Assembly: GCA_033442325.1 (NCBI GenBank)
Contig: JAWQFM010000004.1
Location: 324,459-388,458 of the forward strand
Length of the DNA: 64,000 nt
Source: Salpingoeca rosetta
Lineage: Eukaryota > Protista > Choanoflagellata
Direction: 5' to 3'
Shown: piece by piece, positions 5,135-53,415 of the stretch
Layout of the letters: each line of letters opens with the position of its first letter
Position numbering within the stretch: the stretch's first letter is position 1
Translations under genes and position numbers: made by a program
Notes under the pieces: model-generated
Told to the model about the DNA's origin: nothing
The model's input: the letters and a program-made list of their open reading frames with translations, nothing else
Databases searched by the model: none

Positions 5135-6397
5135 TCAGCAGCCAGGGTCGATGAGTAGCACATCCCCAGCGACGTGTGGAATGGCGTAGATGAGGCCATT
5201 GCTTGCGAGGACACCTTCATGCCACTTGTCGATGCCAGAAGTGACTGGAAGCGACGTGGTGTCGGTGGTGTTGGTTGCTGGGTCGATGATGAGGACAGAT
5301 TCCGCATTAAGCGGGATGCCGAAGATGTTGCCGTTTGGTGCAAGCACGCCGCCGAGCCACTTGGAACCGTCGCTCGAGAGGCCGGTGATGGCCGTCGTGT
5401 CGGCCGTGTTTGAGGTGGGGTCGATGACGAGCACTGTCGTGGCGGATTTCGGAATGCCGTAAATGAGACCGTTCCGCGCGAGCACGGTGCCAAACCACTT
5501 GCTGCTACCTGTCAACCCAGCAATAGATGTGGTGTCTGCGGTGTTCCTGGCTGGGTCGATGATGAGGACGGCGTTTGCGCTGTGTGGCACGCTGTAGATG
5601 AGCCCGTTGGCGGCTTGAACACCCCCGAACCATTTGAAGTAGTCCCCACCAAAGCCAGATATCGTCGTGACATCTGTGGTGTGGAGAGTGGGGTTGATGA
5701 CGAGCACAGAGCTTGCAGACCACGGAATGCCGTAGATGTGCCCGTTGTGTGCGGCAACCCCGCTCCTCCATTTTCCGCCACCGCCGCCGGAAGGCAGTCC
5801 GCCCAGGGTGGTGGTGTCCACGGTGTTTGCGCGTGGGTCAATGATGAGCACAGACGTTGCGCTTTCGGGAAACCCGTAGATGAGCCCGTTGTCGGCCAGC
5901 ACCCCGCCCGTCCATTTGCTGCCGCCTGCAGGCAAACCGGAGATGGATGTTGTGTCGGCGGTGTTGGTGGCAGGGTCGATGATGAGCACGGACGTGGACA
6001 AGTACGGGATGCCGTAGATGAGCCCGTTGTCGGCCAGCACGCCGCCAATCCAGCCGCGGTCCATCATGCCCATGTTTGGAATGGAAGTTGTCGTTGGCGG
6101 GAAGCGACGGCACAGCGCCTCGCGTTGCTCTTGCAACTGAATTGCCTGTCTTGACACCACACGCTGCTGTTCAAGCACAAGCGCGAACATCTTGCCCACG
6201 TCCACTCCGTTCACAAACACTGGTTCAGTCAGCGCATCGCTCGTGTTGATGTGCAGGGCGCCGCTCCCGTCCCGGCCAATGCCGACATCACCACTGAGCG
6301 CTGCAGTTTGGGGCAGTGGTGCGACAAGAAGAAGCAGCAGCAGCAGCAGCAGTAGACGCAGCGGTGGGAGGAAGAGGAGGAGGGCGAGGGTTGACAT
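5135..6397 (-). CDS. Secreted protein A: signal peptide, HINTSD..PVFVNG neck, short coiled coil, seven ~47-aa repeats (predicted 7-bladed beta-propeller)
   Basis: Leu-rich signal from ATG 6397; seven repeats of KWxGGVLAxNGLIYGIPxSAxSVLIIDPxTNTxDTT; ends IDPGC-stop; intronless. Confidence 0.85.
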   Translation of the reverse strand: MSTLALLLFLPPLRLLLLLLLLLLVAPLPQTAALSGDVGIGRDGSGALHINTSDALTEPVFVNGVDVGKMFALVLEQQRVVSRQAIQLQEQREALCRRFPPTTTSIPNMGMMDRGWIGGVLADNGLIYGIPYLSTSVLIIDPATNTADTTSISGLPAGGSKWTGGVLADNGLIYGFPESATSVLIIDPRANTVDTTTLGGLPSGGGGGKWRSGVAAHNGHIYGIPWSASSVLVINPTLHTTDVTTISGFGGDYFKWFGGVQAANGLIYSVPHSANAVLIIDPARNTADTTSIAGLTGSSKWFGTVLARNGLIYGIPKSATTVLVIDPTSNTADTTAITGLSSDGSKWLGGVLAPNGNIFGIPLNAESVLIIDPATNTTDTTSLPVTSGIDKWHEGVLASNGLIYAIPHVAGDVLLIDPGC

Positions 6398-6667
6398 GAT
6401 GATCTGTGGCTGGTGGGTTGTGGTGTTGTGCGTTTTGTTGGAGAGTGCGTCTTGGCATTTCGCTTTGCTTTTTGCCAGCAACAAGAGTGCTTACCACAGA
6501 GAAGCAGTGCTTGTCAATTCTGATTGTGCCGAGGCTCAAGAGACACTCAGCGTTCATTCATCCATCCACAAGAACACCGGCAGAAAGCAGAAGAGGAAGT
6601 CGAACACCCTGTCACTGACCCTTCCGTCGACAACAACGCAAACAAGCAAACACTGCCAAGAACAACA

Positions 6668-8866
<2,199 letters not shown>

Positions 8867-26901: not shown

Positions 26902-29900
26902 ATGTCCACACCACACACGATTGGGCGAATGAGTGCACCGCAACTTCAGTCATGGCTTGAGGACCACGCTCTCAACACCGCCGAAGCCGGCAAATTGACT
27001 GATGTGTCTGGAGAGCAGCTCGTGAGCGTTGCACGAAGGGGCGAGACAGCGTTGCAATCGTCGTTTCAAGTTTCTGCAGTGTACGCTCAGTCATTGCTGG
27101 AAGCACTTCACCTGGGAGATAGCATCCATGGCGAGGACGCGACTCGTCATGCCTACAGTGAAGGAGATTGCCAAGATACACGAGAATTTCAACTCAAACA
27201 AGAAGTCCTGCAACAGTTTGACATTGTTGATGTTCAGCTTCCGGCCCGGTGGCGCCGTTGGCTGTTCAGCACATCAACACGACACAAACCAGTGACGCTA
27301 CGAACGTCCCTGAAGGACACAGTGAAGAAGAACATCGTTCACATTGTGAAAGCCACCACAACGCCCAATCCGTACGTGTTTGCTTTGACAGCACTCGGGC
27401 TTTGTAAAGGCGGCTATGACCGGGTGCAGATTATGAAGAAAAACAAAGCGGCCGCGGAGGGCTTGGCCAAGCGAATCAAGCAAGTGGTCAAGTTTGGTGG
27501 CCCAATTCTTGTGTATTTTGAGAAGATTGAAGACGGGGAACGACTCATCGACGATGAAGCTGAAGAACTGCTGGAGGCTTCATTCTGTGCCTTTCGGCTC
27601 ATTGGCGACTACAACAAGGATAGCAAGGCGAAAGCAATCCTCCACTTTTTGGGCTGTCACCAATTCAAGAAGGCCATTCATGAAGCCAAGCAGCGGTTGC
27701 TGGAGGCTGTCAGTTTCACTGCCATGGGTGCGATCTCCACGATGGTGAAAGAGCAAAGGACACCCGGATGGCTGAGCACACTTAGCAGCGTAGAGGCAGA
27801 GGATGCCGTGCAGTTTTGGATCAAGCACAACTTCCAGGAATCTGTTTCTGTCAGGAAGCTAGTGGATGCTATTGTCCTTTGGGTTCATGACGCTGACATG
27901 GGAGACAGTCACGGCAATGATGATGGCTGGCCAAACTCCGCAAAAGCAGTACGTGATGAGCAAGCGGTGTTCAGCTTCTTCAGTCGTCAGGACACAATCG
28001 AAACAACAACAATTCAGCGTTTTGCTCTGTTTGTCAAGGATTCGCCATCGATTGCGCACGCCGCAACAGCTGTCGTCGAGCGAATGGAGGATGCTAAACT
28101 CCGCAAAGCCCTGCGCAATGTGTTGGCGCCCGTGGACTTTGGTCGTGACCTCATCAAGCACCAGCGCGCGTTTGTGGAGGGCACGCGGCAGTGGGTGTTT
28201 GACGCCTTTGAGGAGTGGGCGATGTGCGAGGACGATAGGGTGGCGAAGAAAGCGAAACAGACTCGCCCACACAGCGACAAAGATAAAGGGCAGCGGCGCG
28301 TGTTCTGGGTGAAGGGGACAGGTGGACTTGGAAAGTCCGTCATCGCGGCACAGCTTATCAAGCGGTACGGCCAGGCAAGCACCAGCAAGCAGCCACTCAT
28401 CGCCGCCCACTACTTCTGCAAGCACGACGCCACCAATCGCAACGACCCCCGCAAGGCGATCAACACCCTCGCCTTTCGGCTTGCGACGCAGCTGCCCGAG
28501 CTCAGGGAAGAGTACAAGGCTATTCTTCAAGGTGAAAACGAGGAGAGACGCAACAACTTTACGACACACGCGGATGGCAGTGAGGGCACCGTGGAAGATG
28601 CCTTCAACGTGGTACTCGCTGAGCCACTCAAGGCCGCGCTCGGCGAAGATTCAGGCGGCAAAGGCAGCGATGTCTTCATCCTGATTGACGCATTGGATGA
28701 GTTGCGTGCCGGCAACAGTCGCGCGCAGTTCCTGCGTCTGGTGGGCAAGCTGCTGCCATCACTGCCACCGTGTGTGCGAATTGTGGTGACGTCCCGCCCG
28801 GAGGAAGACATTCTGGCCTTGCTGAAGAACTTGAACCCATTCACCATCGACAAGCAGGATGAGCGGCAGCGCGAAGACCTGCAGTTGTGTGTGCGGAACA
28901 TCATCATCAAGCAGAGCAGCCTGGGCAAGCTGAACCAGGACGAGCAAGAGGAGGTGGTGCAGATGGTCGTTGACCGGGCGGATGGCGTGTTTCTGGCGGT
29001 GCGGCTGATTGCTTGTGAAGTGGACAAAGCAGAGGGCAACACAAGGCATCCGCTCACTGTGGCCGATATACGACGACTGGTGGGCAAGGGCGGCAGCTTC
29101 ATTGACGGCACGTACACGGAGACGCTCGACCGCATCCAGGCGCGAATCAAGGAGGCGGCGGGCGATGACGACGGTGTGCTGGCCGCGCTGCAAGGCACCC
29201 TGCATGACATGTTGGCGGTAATTGTGGCGTCGCTGCAGCCACTACGCGTGGACGATCTGCACGAGCTGTGCGGTGGTGGCCGGGTGCAGAGCAAGGCGCT
29301 GACGAAGCGGCTGCTGAGTGCGCTGTCGCTCCTCTTCTCCAGCAGCAGCAAGCATGACGTGGTTGAGCCCCTACACAAGACCGTCAACGACTTCCTCACT
29401 GACAAGCAGCGCGCTGGCCCTCACTTTGTGGACGAGCGTGAAGGCCACGCCATCCTTGCTCGCGCTTGCCTGCGCGTGTTGGAAGACAGAGGCCTGTTGT
29501 CACACGGCGACAAAGCAGCATCCTCAGCCGAGTTGGTGGAGGAGAAGGGTGCAGAGGAATCGGTGGTGGTGTATGCCATTGCATTTGGCCATCAACATCT
29601 TACGACGTGTGCAGAGGCAATGCAGGCGCAGGCGACATTTGAGATTGAAGGTTTGCAGCGTGCCTGTGAGGCGGCCCTTTGTTCATGGCAGGGAGCGTGG
29701 CTGCAGCCGCGCGGTAAAGCAGAGCTGACAAAGCAGGAGCTGGCGCTGGTGAAGGACGGGGCACTGCAGCAATCACAGCACGAGGCGACGAAGGCATTTG
29801 CACAGTGGCTGCTGCTGCAGACGTACACGCTTGGGCGCACGAAGCCGCTGGTGGCTGAACTTGCGGCTTTGGTGGCAGCAACAGATGAGATCAAAGACAG

Positions 29901-31887
29901 AGAGGCCCTCCACGCAATGCTCGACGACGTCAGGCGCATGTACGGCACACATTGGGCGTCGGAGGAAGACATTCGCACAGGAATTGCCCAATCATGTGCG
30001 AACCTGCCGCTGAGGAGCAGCTTGGCTGCTTCGCCTGCAATAGCCTTGCTGTGGACGGTTTCGTCACAACCACAACCACTGATGACCATCCCGCCGATAC
30101 TGACGCAAGACCCGTGCCTGATGCAACTAAAGGGGCACACAGGCTATGTCACATCTGTTTCGTTCAGCGCTGATGGCAAGCGCCTCGTGTCTGGCAGCTG
30201 GGACAAGACGGTGCGCGTTTGGGATGCCTCCACGGGCCAGGAGCTTGCTCGGTGCATCGGGCACACAGATTGGGTCACCTCAGTGGTGTTTACACCTGAT
30301 AACAAACACATCATGTCTGTCAGCGATGACAAGACAGTGCGCACTTGGGACAGTGATACAACCGATGAGTTGATATTGCGTCGCATGCAAACAGAAGAGT
30401 TGGGCCAAAGAGCAGCGGTGAGCGCTAATGGCAAGTATGTGAGAACCGGAATTTGGGCGGAGCGATTTCGGGCTGGCAACCACAATACACCAAACTCCAG
30501 TGCCACCTCAGCTTCAGTCAGCCCGGACGGTCAACGAATCGTGTCTGGGTGCGCTGACAACACGGTGCGTGTCTGGGATGCTCACACAGGACACAAGCTC
30601 GCTCAGTGGAACGGCCACACGGCTAGCATTAGCTCAGTAGCATTCAGTGATGATGGGAAACTCATCGCGTCTGGGAGCCAGGACATGACGGTTCGGATCT
30701 GGGACGCTGGCACGGGTAACTTGTTAGCTCAATGCGATGGTCACTTGGGTGATGTCAACTCCGTGACCTTCAGTGCGGATGGGACGCGGATCGCGTCTGG
30801 GAGTGACGACAAGACAGTGCGCATTTGGAACGCTAAAACTGGACAGGAGATGGCAACGTACATTGGGCACGCAGACAACGTCACCTCAGTGACGTTCAGC
30901 CCCGATGGCAAGCGTATCGTGTCTGGGAGCATCGACAGCACCGTGCGCATCTGGGACGCTGGGGTGCGCCAGACACTGGCACAGTGTCACGGGCACACGA
31001 ATGATGTCTACTCCGTGGCGTTTAGCCCCGATGACAAGCGCATCGTGTCTGGGAGCCATGACAAGACCGTGCGTGTCTGGGATGCTGAAACAGGTCAGGA
31101 ACTAGCACAGTGCAATGGACACACTAACAGCGTCACCTCAGTTTCGTTCAGCCCCACTGGCACGCGTATCGTGTCTGGGAGCAAGGACAAGACAGTACGC
31201 ATCTGGAACACGGACACGGGCGAGGAGCTGGCTCGGTACAGCGGGCACACAGGGAAAGTCAGGTCGGTGGCGTTAAGTCGTGATGGCAAGCTGATCGTGT
31301 CTGGGAGCGGCACCCCTTCGGCGCTCTTTACGAGGGGTGAAGACTATTCTGTGCGCATCTGGGACGTGACTACGGGGCAGCAGCTCACCAAGTGCGACGG
31401 CCACACGGATGTTGTCACCTCGGTTGCTTTCGGTCCAGATGGACAACACATTGTGTCCGGTAGTCGCGACAACACTGTGTGCATCTGGGACGTGACTACG
31501 GGGCAGCAGCTCACCAAGTGCGACGGCCACACGGATGTTGTCACCTCGGTTGCTTTCGGTCCTGATGGACGACGCATTGTGTCCGGTAGTCGCGACAACA
31601 CTGTGTGCATCTGGGACGTGACTACGGGGCAGCAGCTCACCAAGTGCGACGGCCACACGGATGTTGTCACCTCGGTTGCTTTCGGTCCTGATGGACGACG
31701 CATTGTGTCTGGTAGCCACGACAAGACTGTGCGAGTCTGGGACTCAAGTACCGGGGAAGATCTGTGTGTGTACAGAGGTCATACAAGCACGGTCAGGTCA
31801 GCAGTGTTCTCCACTCTTGGTACTTTCATCGTGTCCGGAGGTTATGACAACACCGTGCGCATCTGGAACACTGAGAGAATGCCGTGA
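26902..31887 (+). CDS. Intronless NLR-like STAND protein: SAM-like, MLKL/MCAfunc-like four-helix bundle, Cbl-type EF-hand-like, NACHT, ~13-14 WD40 (HET-E-like)
   Basis: 1661-aa ORF. FVEGTRQW, VFWVKGTGGLGKS (Walker A), AAHYFC, VFILIDALDE (Walker B), IVVTSRPE, LHKTVNDFLTD; WD40 GH..VTSV.FS.DG.RIVSGS.DKTVRIWD from ~30120. NACHT-WD40 is secure; the N-terminal domain calls are by-eye inference. Confidence 0.9.
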   Translation: MSTPHTIGRMSAPQLQSWLEDHALNTAEAGKLTDVSGEQLVSVARRGETALQSSFQVSAVYAQSLLEALHLGDSIHGEDATRHAYSEGDCQDTREFQLKQEVLQQFDIVDVQLPARWRRWLFSTSTRHKPVTLRTSLKDTVKKNIVHIVKATTTPNPYVFALTALGLCKGGYDRVQIMKKNKAAAEGLAKRIKQVVKFGGPILVYFEKIEDGERLIDDEAEELLEASFCAFRLIGDYNKDSKAKAILHFLGCHQFKKAIHEAKQRLLEAVSFTAMGAISTMVKEQRTPGWLSTLSSVEAEDAVQFWIKHNFQESVSVRKLVDAIVLWVHDADMGDSHGNDDGWPNSAKAVRDEQAVFSFFSRQDTIETTTIQRFALFVKDSPSIAHAATAVVERMEDAKLRKALRNVLAPVDFGRDLIKHQRAFVEGTRQWVFDAFEEWAMCEDDRVAKKAKQTRPHSDKDKGQRRVFWVKGTGGLGKSVIAAQLIKRYGQASTSKQPLIAAHYFCKHDATNRNDPRKAINTLAFRLATQLPELREEYKAILQGENEERRNNFTTHADGSEGTVEDAFNVVLAEPLKAALGEDSGGKGSDVFILIDALDELRAGNSRAQFLRLVGKLLPSLPPCVRIVVTSRPEEDILALLKNLNPFTIDKQDERQREDLQLCVRNIIIKQSSLGKLNQDEQEEVVQMVVDRADGVFLAVRLIACEVDKAEGNTRHPLTVADIRRLVGKGGSFIDGTYTETLDRIQARIKEAAGDDDGVLAALQGTLHDMLAVIVASLQPLRVDDLHELCGGGRVQSKALTKRLLSALSLLFSSSSKHDVVEPLHKTVNDFLTDKQRAGPHFVDEREGHAILARACLRVLEDRGLLSHGDKAASSAELVEEKGAEESVVVYAIAFGHQHLTTCAEAMQAQATFEIEGLQRACEAALCSWQGAWLQPRGKAELTKQELALVKDGALQQSQHEATKAFAQWLLLQTYTLGRTKPLVAELAALVAATDEIKDREALHAMLDDVRRMYGTHWASEEDIRTGIAQSCANLPLRSSLAASPAIALLWTVSSQPQPLMTIPPILTQDPCLMQLKGHTGYVTSVSFSADGKRLVSGSWDKTVRVWDASTGQELARCIGHTDWVTSVVFTPDNKHIMSVSDDKTVRTWDSDTTDELILRRMQTEELGQRAAVSANGKYVRTGIWAERFRAGNHNTPNSSATSASVSPDGQRIVSGCADNTVRVWDAHTGHKLAQWNGHTASISSVAFSDDGKLIASGSQDMTVRIWDAGTGNLLAQCDGHLGDVNSVTFSADGTRIASGSDDKTVRIWNAKTGQEMATYIGHADNVTSVTFSPDGKRIVSGSIDSTVRIWDAGVRQTLAQCHGHTNDVYSVAFSPDDKRIVSGSHDKTVRVWDAETGQELAQCNGHTNSVTSVSFSPTGTRIVSGSKDKTVRIWNTDTGEELARYSGHTGKVRSVALSRDGKLIVSGSGTPSALFTRGEDYSVRIWDVTTGQQLTKCDGHTDVVTSVAFGPDGQHIVSGSRDNTVCIWDVTTGQQLTKCDGHTDVVTSVAFGPDGRRIVSGSRDNTVCIWDVTTGQQLTKCDGHTDVVTSVAFGPDGRRIVSGSHDKTVRVWDSSTGEDLCVYRGHTSTVRSAVFSTLGTFIVSGGYDNTVRIWNTERMP
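31355..31732 (+). repeat. Three near-identical 126-bp WD40-coding tandem repeats
   Basis: Units begin at 31355, 31481 and 31607 (gcatctgggacgtgactacggggcagcagctcacc...) and differ at only a few bases. Confidence 0.95.
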
Positions 31888-41330: not shown

Positions 41331-42578
41331 AACCGTCTTGTCTTCGATCATGAGTGTGGTCTTGATCACCGTTGGCCTGACACGCTGCTGTCGCTTAAGA
41401 CGGCCGCATTGCCCTGATCACACGAGCCACATGCCACGGTGGACTTTGCCTGAGGAGGCTGCCATGGCTGTTGTTGTTGTGGTGGTGGTGGTGGAGTCGA
41501 GTGGCCACATGCAGCAGCAGCAGGTTCACGTTGTTCTCCTGCTCCTCCATCCACCGTCTGGCAAGGACAGCTGGCCCAGACTCAACATCACGCATACTTG
41601 CAGTTGTCTTGGCGAGGAGCGTGCCGTGTTGGTGGAGAGGAGGCGCTGCGCGCATGCATGCTGGTGCCAACCAGACGGAGGGAGGAAGGGCACACACTCC
41701 TTATGATACCGGCAGCAGTGACTGGGGAGTGTCTTGGACAGAGAGGGACAGCTGCATCATATGCGTACATCAGGTGCACCTGTGTGCGTCCTTGTCTGCA
41801 TGGACACTATGTTCACAGAGGCGCGAGGCAGCGTGGAGAAGGTGGTGGCGGGGGGACGAGAGCGTCACGATGTCAGACACGACGTAGATGCGAGAGGAGG
41901 TAAGGTGCACCAGCACAATGGAAGATAGGCAGATGGGCGTGAGCACGTGTCGTTGGAACAACGTGTGATGTATGTGAGCGTATGCGTTTACGTGTGTTGC
42001 GTAGATAAGGCTGGGCAATGCAATGCAATGCAATGTAATGGAATGACCTCACACACACTCACACACACGCACCTTTGGATGAACAGTGTATTCTTCAGTC
42101 ACGATGGCTGCCTCCTTCACATGTGTTCAACTCACGCCCTTCTTCTGCACTGCGTGATGAAGCTGTGTGCCGTGTGTGCTCTGTCCTTGTTGGTCCAGTG
42201 ATGAGGTGATGAAGGAAGGCTGAGGGATGGATGGATGGATGGATGGATGGAAGGCTGTCTCAAGGGATGGATGCGTGTCAACGTGCTCCTTTCCACAACA
42301 ACAACAACACACACACAACAGTGAACTTGCTTGCTTGTGTGTGGCTGGAAATCCAATGCACGATTCCCAACAATCGTCCACAACCACAACCAGCCAAAAA
42401 CGCCACAAACAACAACAACCAATCCGGTCTTCTTTTGTCTTCTCTTGGTGTTGCGCCTGTCCTGCGAACAGCCACGCGAACGAGGAAGGAGGAAGGCAGA
42501 CTTAACTTCTCCTTCTGTTCTCCTCTTCTTCTCTTCTCTTCTCTCCTTCTCCTTCTCCTCTTCTCCTCTTCTTGTGCG

Positions 42579-43814
42579 ATGAGAACGATGGGGTGCCTGC
42601 AGGCACGTGTGATGCTGCTCCCCGTGCTGCTGGTGGTGGCGGCGGCAGTGTGCTGGATGCCGTTCATCAGCAGCGTTGTTGGAGAGGTGACGCTGGTGGA
42701 GGATGATGCGGGCGCGTTTCACATCAACACTAGCGATCCAATGAGCCAACCGGTGTTTGTGAACGGGGTGAATGTGCACGAGACACTCAGCACGCTGATG
42801 AGCACCGTCTCGGTGCAGCAGAGCATGATCGATTGTGTCTTTGGCAGCAAAGTGTGCACCCCGAGCGCCAGCACGTTTGGCCAGCTCGACTCCCTGGGTG
42901 GAAAGTGGCTTGGGGGTGTGCTGGCCAACAACGGCCTGATCTACGCTGCACCTCGGAACTCCCCTTCCGTGCTCATCATCGACCCCAGCACCAACACCGT
43001 CGATACAACCACAATCACCGCACTTGGAACGGACAAGAACAAATGGGCGGGTGCTGTGTTGGCACAGACGAGGCTTATTTATATGTTCCCTTCACGAAGG
43101 GAGACCATGCTCATCATCGATCCGGACACCAACACAGTTGACGCCACCAGCATCCACTCGCTTGGATCGATGGATGCCAAGTGGTTTAGCGGTGTGGTGG
43201 CTCACAACGGCCTCATCTTCGGCGTTCCGTACTTCGCCACGGCAGTTCTGATCATTGATCCAGAAACCAACACAGCCGACACCACCACGCTGTCCGGGCT
43301 GTCGAGCCAGCAATACAAATGGTACGGCGGTGTGCAAGCGGACAACAGCCTTATCTACTGTATCCCCAGGTCGGCGTCTTCTGTCCTCATCGTCAATCCA
43401 GAGTCCTTCACAATGGACCTCACAACCATCAGCGGCTTCGACACGAGAGCAAAGTGGTTTGGTGGTGTGCTGGCAGGGAATGGCCTCATCTACACCATCC
43501 CAGCATCCTCTGCCACCGCGCTTGTTATAAACCCAGCCACCAACGCCACCGACGAACTACCAATCGCTCAGCAAATCAGCGTCACAAAGTGGATTGGTGG
43601 CGTGCTCGCACCCAATGGCAACATCATTGGCATTCCATTCAGCTCTTCATCCCTCCTCATCTTCGATCCAACCACCAATACTACCGACACAACAACCGTC
43701 AACGATCTTGGTGGCGACTACAAGTGGTGGGATGGCGTGCTCGCACCAAACGGCCTCATCTACGGCATTCCACATGATGCCGAGTCGGTCCTTGTGATTG
43801 ACCCTGGGTGCTGA
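42579..43814 (+). CDS. Secreted 7-repeat propeller protein B
   Basis: Signal peptide; EDDAGAFHINTSD..PVFVNG; seven KWxGGV repeats; IDPGC-stop. Confidence 0.85.
   Translation: MRTMGCLQARVMLLPVLLVVAAAVCWMPFISSVVGEVTLVEDDAGAFHINTSDPMSQPVFVNGVNVHETLSTLMSTVSVQQSMIDCVFGSKVCTPSASTFGQLDSLGGKWLGGVLANNGLIYAAPRNSPSVLIIDPSTNTVDTTTITALGTDKNKWAGAVLAQTRLIYMFPSRRETMLIIDPDTNTVDATSIHSLGSMDAKWFSGVVAHNGLIFGVPYFATAVLIIDPETNTADTTTLSGLSSQQYKWYGGVQADNSLIYCIPRSASSVLIVNPESFTMDLTTISGFDTRAKWFGGVLAGNGLIYTIPASSATALVINPATNATDELPIAQQISVTKWIGGVLAPNGNIIGIPFSSSSLLIFDPTTNTTDTTTVNDLGGDYKWWDGVLAPNGLIYGIPHDAESVLVIDPGC

Positions 43815-48891: not shown

Positions 48892-53415
<4,524 letters not shown>

Follow-up and report, generated by a model that had tools for sequence, protein, structure and literature searches.

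In the choanoflagellate Salpingoeca rosetta we identified a NOD-like receptor (NLR)-like protein in which a four-helix bundle, confidently predicted and probably of the MLKL/HeLo-like/RPW8 (CC-R) class, stands ahead of a NACHT NTPase and a WD40 array. Its gene occupies positions 26902–31887 on the forward strand of the window, the whole 64,000-nucleotide stretch analysed here (assembly GCA_033442325.1, contig JAWQFM010000004.1, positions 324,459 to 388,458), and is a single-exon, intronless open reading frame (ORF) of 1661 codons plus stop. The ORF is genuine, and a protein record identical to its product letter for letter exists (P0001). A first-pass annotation of this DNA had described one protein with a signal transduction ATPase with numerous domains (STAND) core in a unicellular relative of animals. 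Both peptides on which it had relied were recovered, GYDRVQIMKK...HEAKQRL at residues 171–266 (nt 27412–27699) and an EF-hand-like stretch from residue 299, and the STAND core was borne out by Pfam and by intact Walker motifs, with a WD40 array as the presumed sensor found in addition.

The core of the protein is an NPHP3_N/NACHT NTPase at residues 461–632 (28282–28797; this and all following features of the protein are on the plus strand; Pfam NPHP3_N E 4.1e-23, NACHT E 7.1e-08), with an intact Walker A motif (GTGGLGKS, residues 472–479, nt 28315–28338) and an intact Walker B motif (VFILIDALDE, residues 591–600, nt 28672–28701). It is followed by a TANC1-like winged helix-turn-helix of the STAND module at residues 768–858 (29203–29475; Pfam HTH_TANC1 E 1.8e-06, 28.3 bits against a cut-off of 27) and by a WD40 array of ~13–14 blades in two propellers, the presumed sensor, at residues ~1072–1658 (30115–31875; Pfam WD40 E 4.5e-149, 13 stretches). 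This order, in which an NTPase with both Walker motifs is succeeded by a winged helix and then by repeats as the presumed sensor at the C-terminus, defines the protein as an NLR-like STAND NTPase of the NACHT clade. It is not a metazoan NLR sensu stricto, as the sensor consists of WD40 repeats and Pfam detected no leucine-rich repeat (LRR), CARD, PYD or Death match. In contrast to the NTPase and the sensor, residues 1–433 had no sequence match in Pfam or PDB.

Fold prediction and sub-threshold profile matches point to a bundle like those of MLKL and CC-R domains

Ahead of the NACHT, a four-helix bundle is predicted with confidence. An AlphaFold2 (AF2) model of residues 120–440, built from a 32-sequence family alignment, reached a mean predicted local distance difference test score (pLDDT) of 85.2, and a model of residues 128–297 (27 sequences) a pLDDT of 87.8 and a predicted template modelling score (pTM) of 0.80. 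In these models the bundle spans residues 157–286 (27370–27759) and comprises helices a1 (157–176), a2 (182–208), a3 (214–236) and a4 (255–286) with a short helix at 240–250, and two arginines within it, R174 and R232, are conserved across the family. An extra helix, a0, precedes the bundle at residues 133–148 (27298–27345) and is conserved in two of the family alignments (A2 and A3). The predicted topology is that of an up-down bundle of four helices whose a3–a4 connection contains a short helix, and it superposes on solved members of the MLKL/HeLo-like/RPW8 class.

Comparing the bundle model with 48,161 representative PDB chains in two runs placed MLKL, AtMLKL3 and the NRG1 CC-R domain among its ten nearest solved structures. 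The neighbours given here ranked 3rd to 10th in both runs and were the Solanaceae domain (SD) of Sw-5b (score 9.6–9.8), the CC-R domain of Arabidopsis NRG1.1 (9.6–9.7), mouse MLKL (9.4–9.5; 2.7 Å over 100 residues), AtMLKL3 (8.9), human MLKL (8.7–8.8) and the 4H domain of Cbl (8.2–8.3). Foldseek against the PDB likewise returned the NRG1.1 CC-R domain with the best template modelling (TM) score in its list (TMt 0.69, probability 0.99). A structure search of the ESM Atlas gave, in its first row, the N-terminus of an ascomycete NPHP3_N-Ank NLR (TM 0.55) and also returned DUF7580 and RPW8.2 (TM 0.54).

The sequence searches point in the same direction. When the 32-sequence family profile (A2) was compared with PDB sequences, the N-terminal domain (NTD) of human MLKL was the best natural match (E 0.28), as it was for a profile restricted to the core bundle (A4; E 0.14). 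In the HMMER alignment, positions 39–153 of the family profile are aligned with human MLKL 10–121, pairing GYDR with IHKR and ILHFL with ICRFL, which reproduces the alignment that the first-pass annotation had given, and L167 falls opposite MLKL L10 and residue 281 opposite MLKL 120. Matching model residues 31–155 with MLKL 1–121, the structural alignment gives the same pairing at both ends, so that two different methods assign the same counterparts along all four helices. Among Pfam families, MLKL_N (PF22215) was matched by two of the 32 family members, more than any other (best E 0.025), including a paralogue on contig C15 with 13.9 bits over profile positions 8–105 of 142. At 12–14% pairwise identity between the bundle and MLKL, the likeness as a sequence match is not above chance, and it carries weight only together with the fold.

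Language-model features placed the bundle nearest to clusters of hypothetical proteins from Basidiomycota (0.95–0.93) and gave 0.91 with 177 shared features for an MLKL_N cluster, with Goodbye and NACHT_N clusters lower. The Pfam families HeLo, Helo_like_N, SesA, Goodbye and NACHT_N matched none of the 32 family members even at E<=10. Two further candidates were discarded. With hhalign, no relation (probability 0.1%) emerged between the family and the N-terminus of P0041, a NACHT-WD40 protein of the basidiomycete Athelia, and the sole genome-wide Pfam MLKL_N match (contig C7, 798254–798625, minus strand, 24.1 bits) is a false positive in a translated CA/TG microsatellite and poly-Asp ORF.

The bundle and a pseudo-EF-hand form an unannotated module family

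Behind the bundle, residues 299–380 (27796–28041) are modelled by AF2 as two helix-loop-helix motifs that form an EF-hand-like pair and are bridged by two short strands. This stretch begins at residue 299 (nt 27796) with AEDAVQFWIKHNF (AEDAVQFW...) and was matched by the EF-hand_7 cluster of the ESM Atlas (TM 0.54 by row). A canonical EF-hand Ca2+ loop, defined by the PROSITE PS00018 pattern, was absent from 24 of 24 family members. We refer to residues 299–380 as a pseudo-EF-hand, which may act as a latch on the bundle. The first-pass annotation had likened this stretch to the Cbl EF-hand-like domain; the resemblance in fold and in a DA..FW...FG motif was retained, while membership in Cbl_N2 (PF02761) was not supported by Pfam. 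A profile of the EF-like domain retrieved no Cbl or EF-hand protein from the PDB, and the language-model search of this part gave nothing usable. Two long helices at residues 384–439 (28051–28218), seen in the AF2 model and spanned by the hhalign alignment of the family profile with the metagenomic protein P0037 described below, run on into the NACHT and bear a conserved motif, L.PVDFG.DL..H...F..GTR.WVF, in the family alignment.

The bundle and EF-like part together have no Pfam match. With a word-indexed homologue search, residues 120–440 returned the protein itself as the sole match, whereas an exhaustive search with a profile of the paralogues against 1.84 billion representative proteins revealed a family that falls into 33 clusters at 50% identity. 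The S. rosetta genome searched comprises 55.4 Mb (68 contigs) and contains at least five paralogues of the N-terminal region. All named family members are from choanoflagellates, namely S. rosetta (including PTSG_12916 and PTSG_10743) and Barroeca monosierra; the others are largely metagenomic, and one that was checked came from a marine metagenome. One member has been deposited under a Usitatibacteraceae metagenome-assembled genome as a partial protein (P0019, NCBI MFY8064408.1, 1148-bp contig), which, given the 1.1-kb contig, is more likely misbinned eukaryotic DNA than a bacterial homologue. In PTSG_10743 (P0024, S. rosetta, 363 aa), the bundle is split by a long acidic or low-complexity insert and the gene model has no NACHT; either the bundle stands alone in this protein, or the gene model is truncated. 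In the C15 paralogue (contig C15, ~208998–211400), the bundle lies in one reading frame (488 aa) and the EF-like/NACHT part in another (724 aa), which may mean that an intron intervenes, that the frame has shifted or that the copy is broken.

The family is conserved together with its architecture. All five full-length relatives scanned combine NACHT and WD40, and a 1080-aa protein from a JGI metagenome (P0037) carries the same bundle and pseudo-EF-hand from its residue 3, fused to NACHT and TPR (hhalign probability 100%, E 5.9e-43). Because P0037 pairs the module with TPR and not with WD40, the module appears to be a mobile N-terminal unit that is combined with different sensors. Distant relatives of the NACHT-WD40 chassis (P0040, P0045 and P0046; metagenomic) carry HEPN_DZIP3 or TIR_2 at the same N-terminal position, which suggests that this position is a slot for death or defence effectors in which the module would be one exchangeable unit.

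A possible sensor-switch-executioner and its alternatives

Taken together, these data suggest the following working model of a choanoflagellate NLR-like receptor. The WD40 propellers would be the ligand-sensing part, the NPHP3_N/NACHT-winged-helix module a nucleotide-driven oligomerisation switch, and the N-terminal bundle with a0 and the trailing pseudo-EF-hand the effector. Binding of a ligand to the WD40 array would release the NACHT, its oligomerisation would cluster the bundles, and the clustered bundles may engage a membrane and lead, by permeabilisation or as a cation channel, to cell death or an ion signal. The parts of this model differ in strength. That the bundle belongs structurally, and probably also evolutionarily, to the MLKL/HeLo-like/RPW8 class we consider likely. 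The whole reading as sensor, switch and executioner we favour by a small degree only. The ORF, the order of its domains, the intact Walker motifs, the conserved family and the predicted fold are shown here, while homology to MLKL_N, the oligomerising switch, the action on membranes and cell death as its outcome are inferred.

Several observations weigh against this interpretation. No single sequence test was significant: the E-values for MLKL in the PDB are 0.14–0.28, a profile of the bundle with a0 and the tail (A3) lost the MLKL match, and the highest MLKL_N score in the family (13.9 bits) lies below the curated cut-off of 27 bits, with no match of the window protein itself at E<=10. The likeness to MLKL asserted in the first-pass annotation was therefore upheld in its fold and in the alignment, not in its statistical significance. 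Similarly, the structural check proposed there returned a four-helix bundle and the NRG1.1 domain; Foldseek gave no PDB row at E<=0.001 with either AF2 model. The bundle is also not at a free N-terminus, as a1 starts at residue 157, behind a0 and ~125 more residues; in relatives it starts after 10–70 residues. Furthermore, three RNA-seq runs of one study, about a quarter of each read, gave almost no reads on a 5.9-kb stretch covering the gene; the few reads found fitted in part only, and a DNA-like run covered the stretch completely.

The internal position of the bundle, behind ~155 residues, would also fit a generic helical regulatory or sensor domain, either an autoinhibitory lid or a recognition domain like the N-terminal Solanaceae domain of Sw-5b, whose likeness to MLKL would reflect a ubiquitous up-down topology. 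We regard this as unlikely. The sequence signals, weak as they are, are specific to MLKL_N and recur in the register that the structure gives, the language model points to N-terminal families of fungal NLRs, this slot is occupied by HEPN or TIR effectors in relatives, and the module of P0037 begins almost at the N-terminus.

Alternatively, the bundle and EF-like pair could form a binding or scaffolding module like the tyrosine-kinase-binding (TKB) domain of Cbl (4H plus EF-hand), in which case the receptor would signal via adaptors and not kill directly. The order of a four-helix bundle followed by an EF-hand-like pair is indeed shared with Cbl, and the DA..FW...FG motif lies in the first EF helix; the EF helix of the S. 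rosetta Cbl protein, KIDAREFWHRQFGKRC, resembles the family motif A.DA..FW...NGFG. With the two-domain model, 14 Cbl, Cbl-b and Cbl-c TKB rows, including the choanoflagellate Cbl entry 6bk5, were among the top 50 in Foldseek and extended over ~240–260 columns across both domains. However, these rows are not significant (E 0.5–1.3, TM 0.16–0.21) and have a root mean square deviation of ~19 Å. The Pfam models Cbl_N and Cbl_N2 matched the true Cbl gene on contig C1 alone and none of the 32 family members at E<=10, and four family profiles retrieved no Cbl chain from the PDB at E<=10, whereas MLKL does appear. In addition, binding of phosphotyrosine by the Cbl TKB requires its SH2 part, and the S. 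rosetta protein has neither an SH2 part nor a Ca2+ loop and continues into a NACHT. The evidence against an assignment to Cbl is stronger than the evidence for it, and a Cbl-like role is accordingly improbable.

A third alternative, that this member of an expanded family has fallen silent or is decaying and has no present function, would fit the near absence of RNA-seq reads, the number of paralogues and the frame change in the C15 copy, but is very unlikely, since chance cannot have kept a frame of 4,983 nt open with its Walker motifs intact and every domain in place, the RNA is from one study alone, and NLR-type genes are commonly expressed at very low levels or upon induction only; the intact ~5-kb frame thus argues against a dead gene.

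The proposed receptor design is known from fungi and plants, its host lineage is new

Fusions of a STAND NTPase to a bundle of the MLKL, HeLo or RPW8 type are well known from fungi, with NACHT and WD40, ANK or TPR repeats, and from plants, in RPW8-type NLRs (RNLs) and coiled-coil NLRs (CC-NLRs). The receptor design itself is therefore known, and what is new is the choanoflagellate host lineage. Among the effectors of fungal NLRs, bundles of the HeLo-like, Goodbye-like and MLKL-like types are reported to be the most abundant, and the MLKL-like bundles of basidiomycete NLRs (BaMLKL) bear an extra N-terminal helix (PMC9815663). The S. rosetta protein shares with these fungal NLRs (HeLo-like, Goodbye, BaMLKL) the order of bundle, NPHP3_N-type NACHT and WD40 (TPR in P0037), with BaMLKL the extra helix ahead of the bundle, and with HET-E-type arrays the near-identical WD40 units. 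It differs from them in its host, in the failure of the fungal Pfam families listed above to match, and in the EF-hand-like pair between the bundle and the NACHT, which we have not seen described for fungal NLRs. No amyloid signalling motif was seen in the S. rosetta protein.

Compared with animal MLKL, in which the four-helix bundle is joined to a brace and a pseudokinase, the S. rosetta protein is divergent in sequence, has extra sequence N-terminal to the bundle and would be controlled by a NACHT-WD40 switch instead of by RIPK3 phosphorylation of a pseudokinase. Plant NRG1/ADR1 proteins combine an RPW8-like CC-R domain with NB-ARC and LRR; in contrast to these and to RPW8 itself, the S. rosetta protein has a NACHT as NTPase, WD40 repeats as sensor and no RPW8 Pfam match.

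Choanoflagellate NACHT proteins have been noted with WD40, TPR, ANK or LRR repeats, with no effector domain assigned (PMC3879445, PMC6040629), and Death and CARD domains are absent from choanoflagellates (PMC6040629); one of the surveys finds these NACHT proteins with ANK, TPR or WD40 repeats only (PMC3879445). On these grounds, NLR-type death signalling has been placed at the origin of animals. The lack of metazoan NLR domains in the S. rosetta protein agrees with both surveys, and our literature text searches retrieved no paper tying choanoflagellates to MLKL, HeLo or RPW8 bundles. Besides the host lineage, what is new is a divergent, unannotated bundle family to which a pseudo-EF-hand is added, and the two together are a candidate addition to domain databases. 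If the proposed receptor function holds, it bears on whether NLR immunity and regulated lytic death are older than multicellularity, and since S. rosetta is genetically tractable, the question can be tested in this organism. A more far-reaching reading, which we hold to be rather doubtful, is that the divergent bundle is a true MLKL/HeLo homologue, the pseudo-EF-hand a brace-like latch and the family a holozoan survivor of an ancestral opisthokont design, an NLR with a built-in pore-forming bundle. In that event, STAND oligomerisation would have been coupled directly to membrane permeabilisation in the lineage that led to animals before CARD/PYD-caspase signalling replaced it.

N-terminal region, WD40 repeats and neighbouring genes

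The N-terminal region ahead of a0 (residues 1–125; 26902–27276) has no match to a Pfam family or to the PDB, and the language model gave nothing usable for residues 1–110. The SAM-like N-terminus proposed in the first-pass annotation is not supported, as the SAM families PF00536 and PF07647 had no match in residues 1–153 even at E<=10. The N-terminus of the C15 paralogue is the sole one that is weakly alike, with 29% identity to residues 1–93 (E 0.18).

Within the WD40 array, which is also matched by many further propeller families in Pfam, Tandem Repeats Finder detected three nearly identical 126-bp units (31349–31743; 95% matches), and units farther upstream (30750–31308) are 69–77% alike. 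The near-identical units are the product of repeats recently amplified or homogenised, a feature shared with the HET-E-type WD40 arrays of fungi.

The 64-kb window is rich in repeat-sensor genes. A neighbouring ORF at 7115–8866 (plus strand) encodes an NPHP3-type protein with TPR_12/TPR_10 repeats and another at 49274–52648 (plus strand) an LRR and tyrosine-kinase receptor-like protein, while ORFs at 5135–6484 (minus strand) and 42231–43814 (plus strand) match the DUF6923 repeat family, the latter also matching DUF5074.

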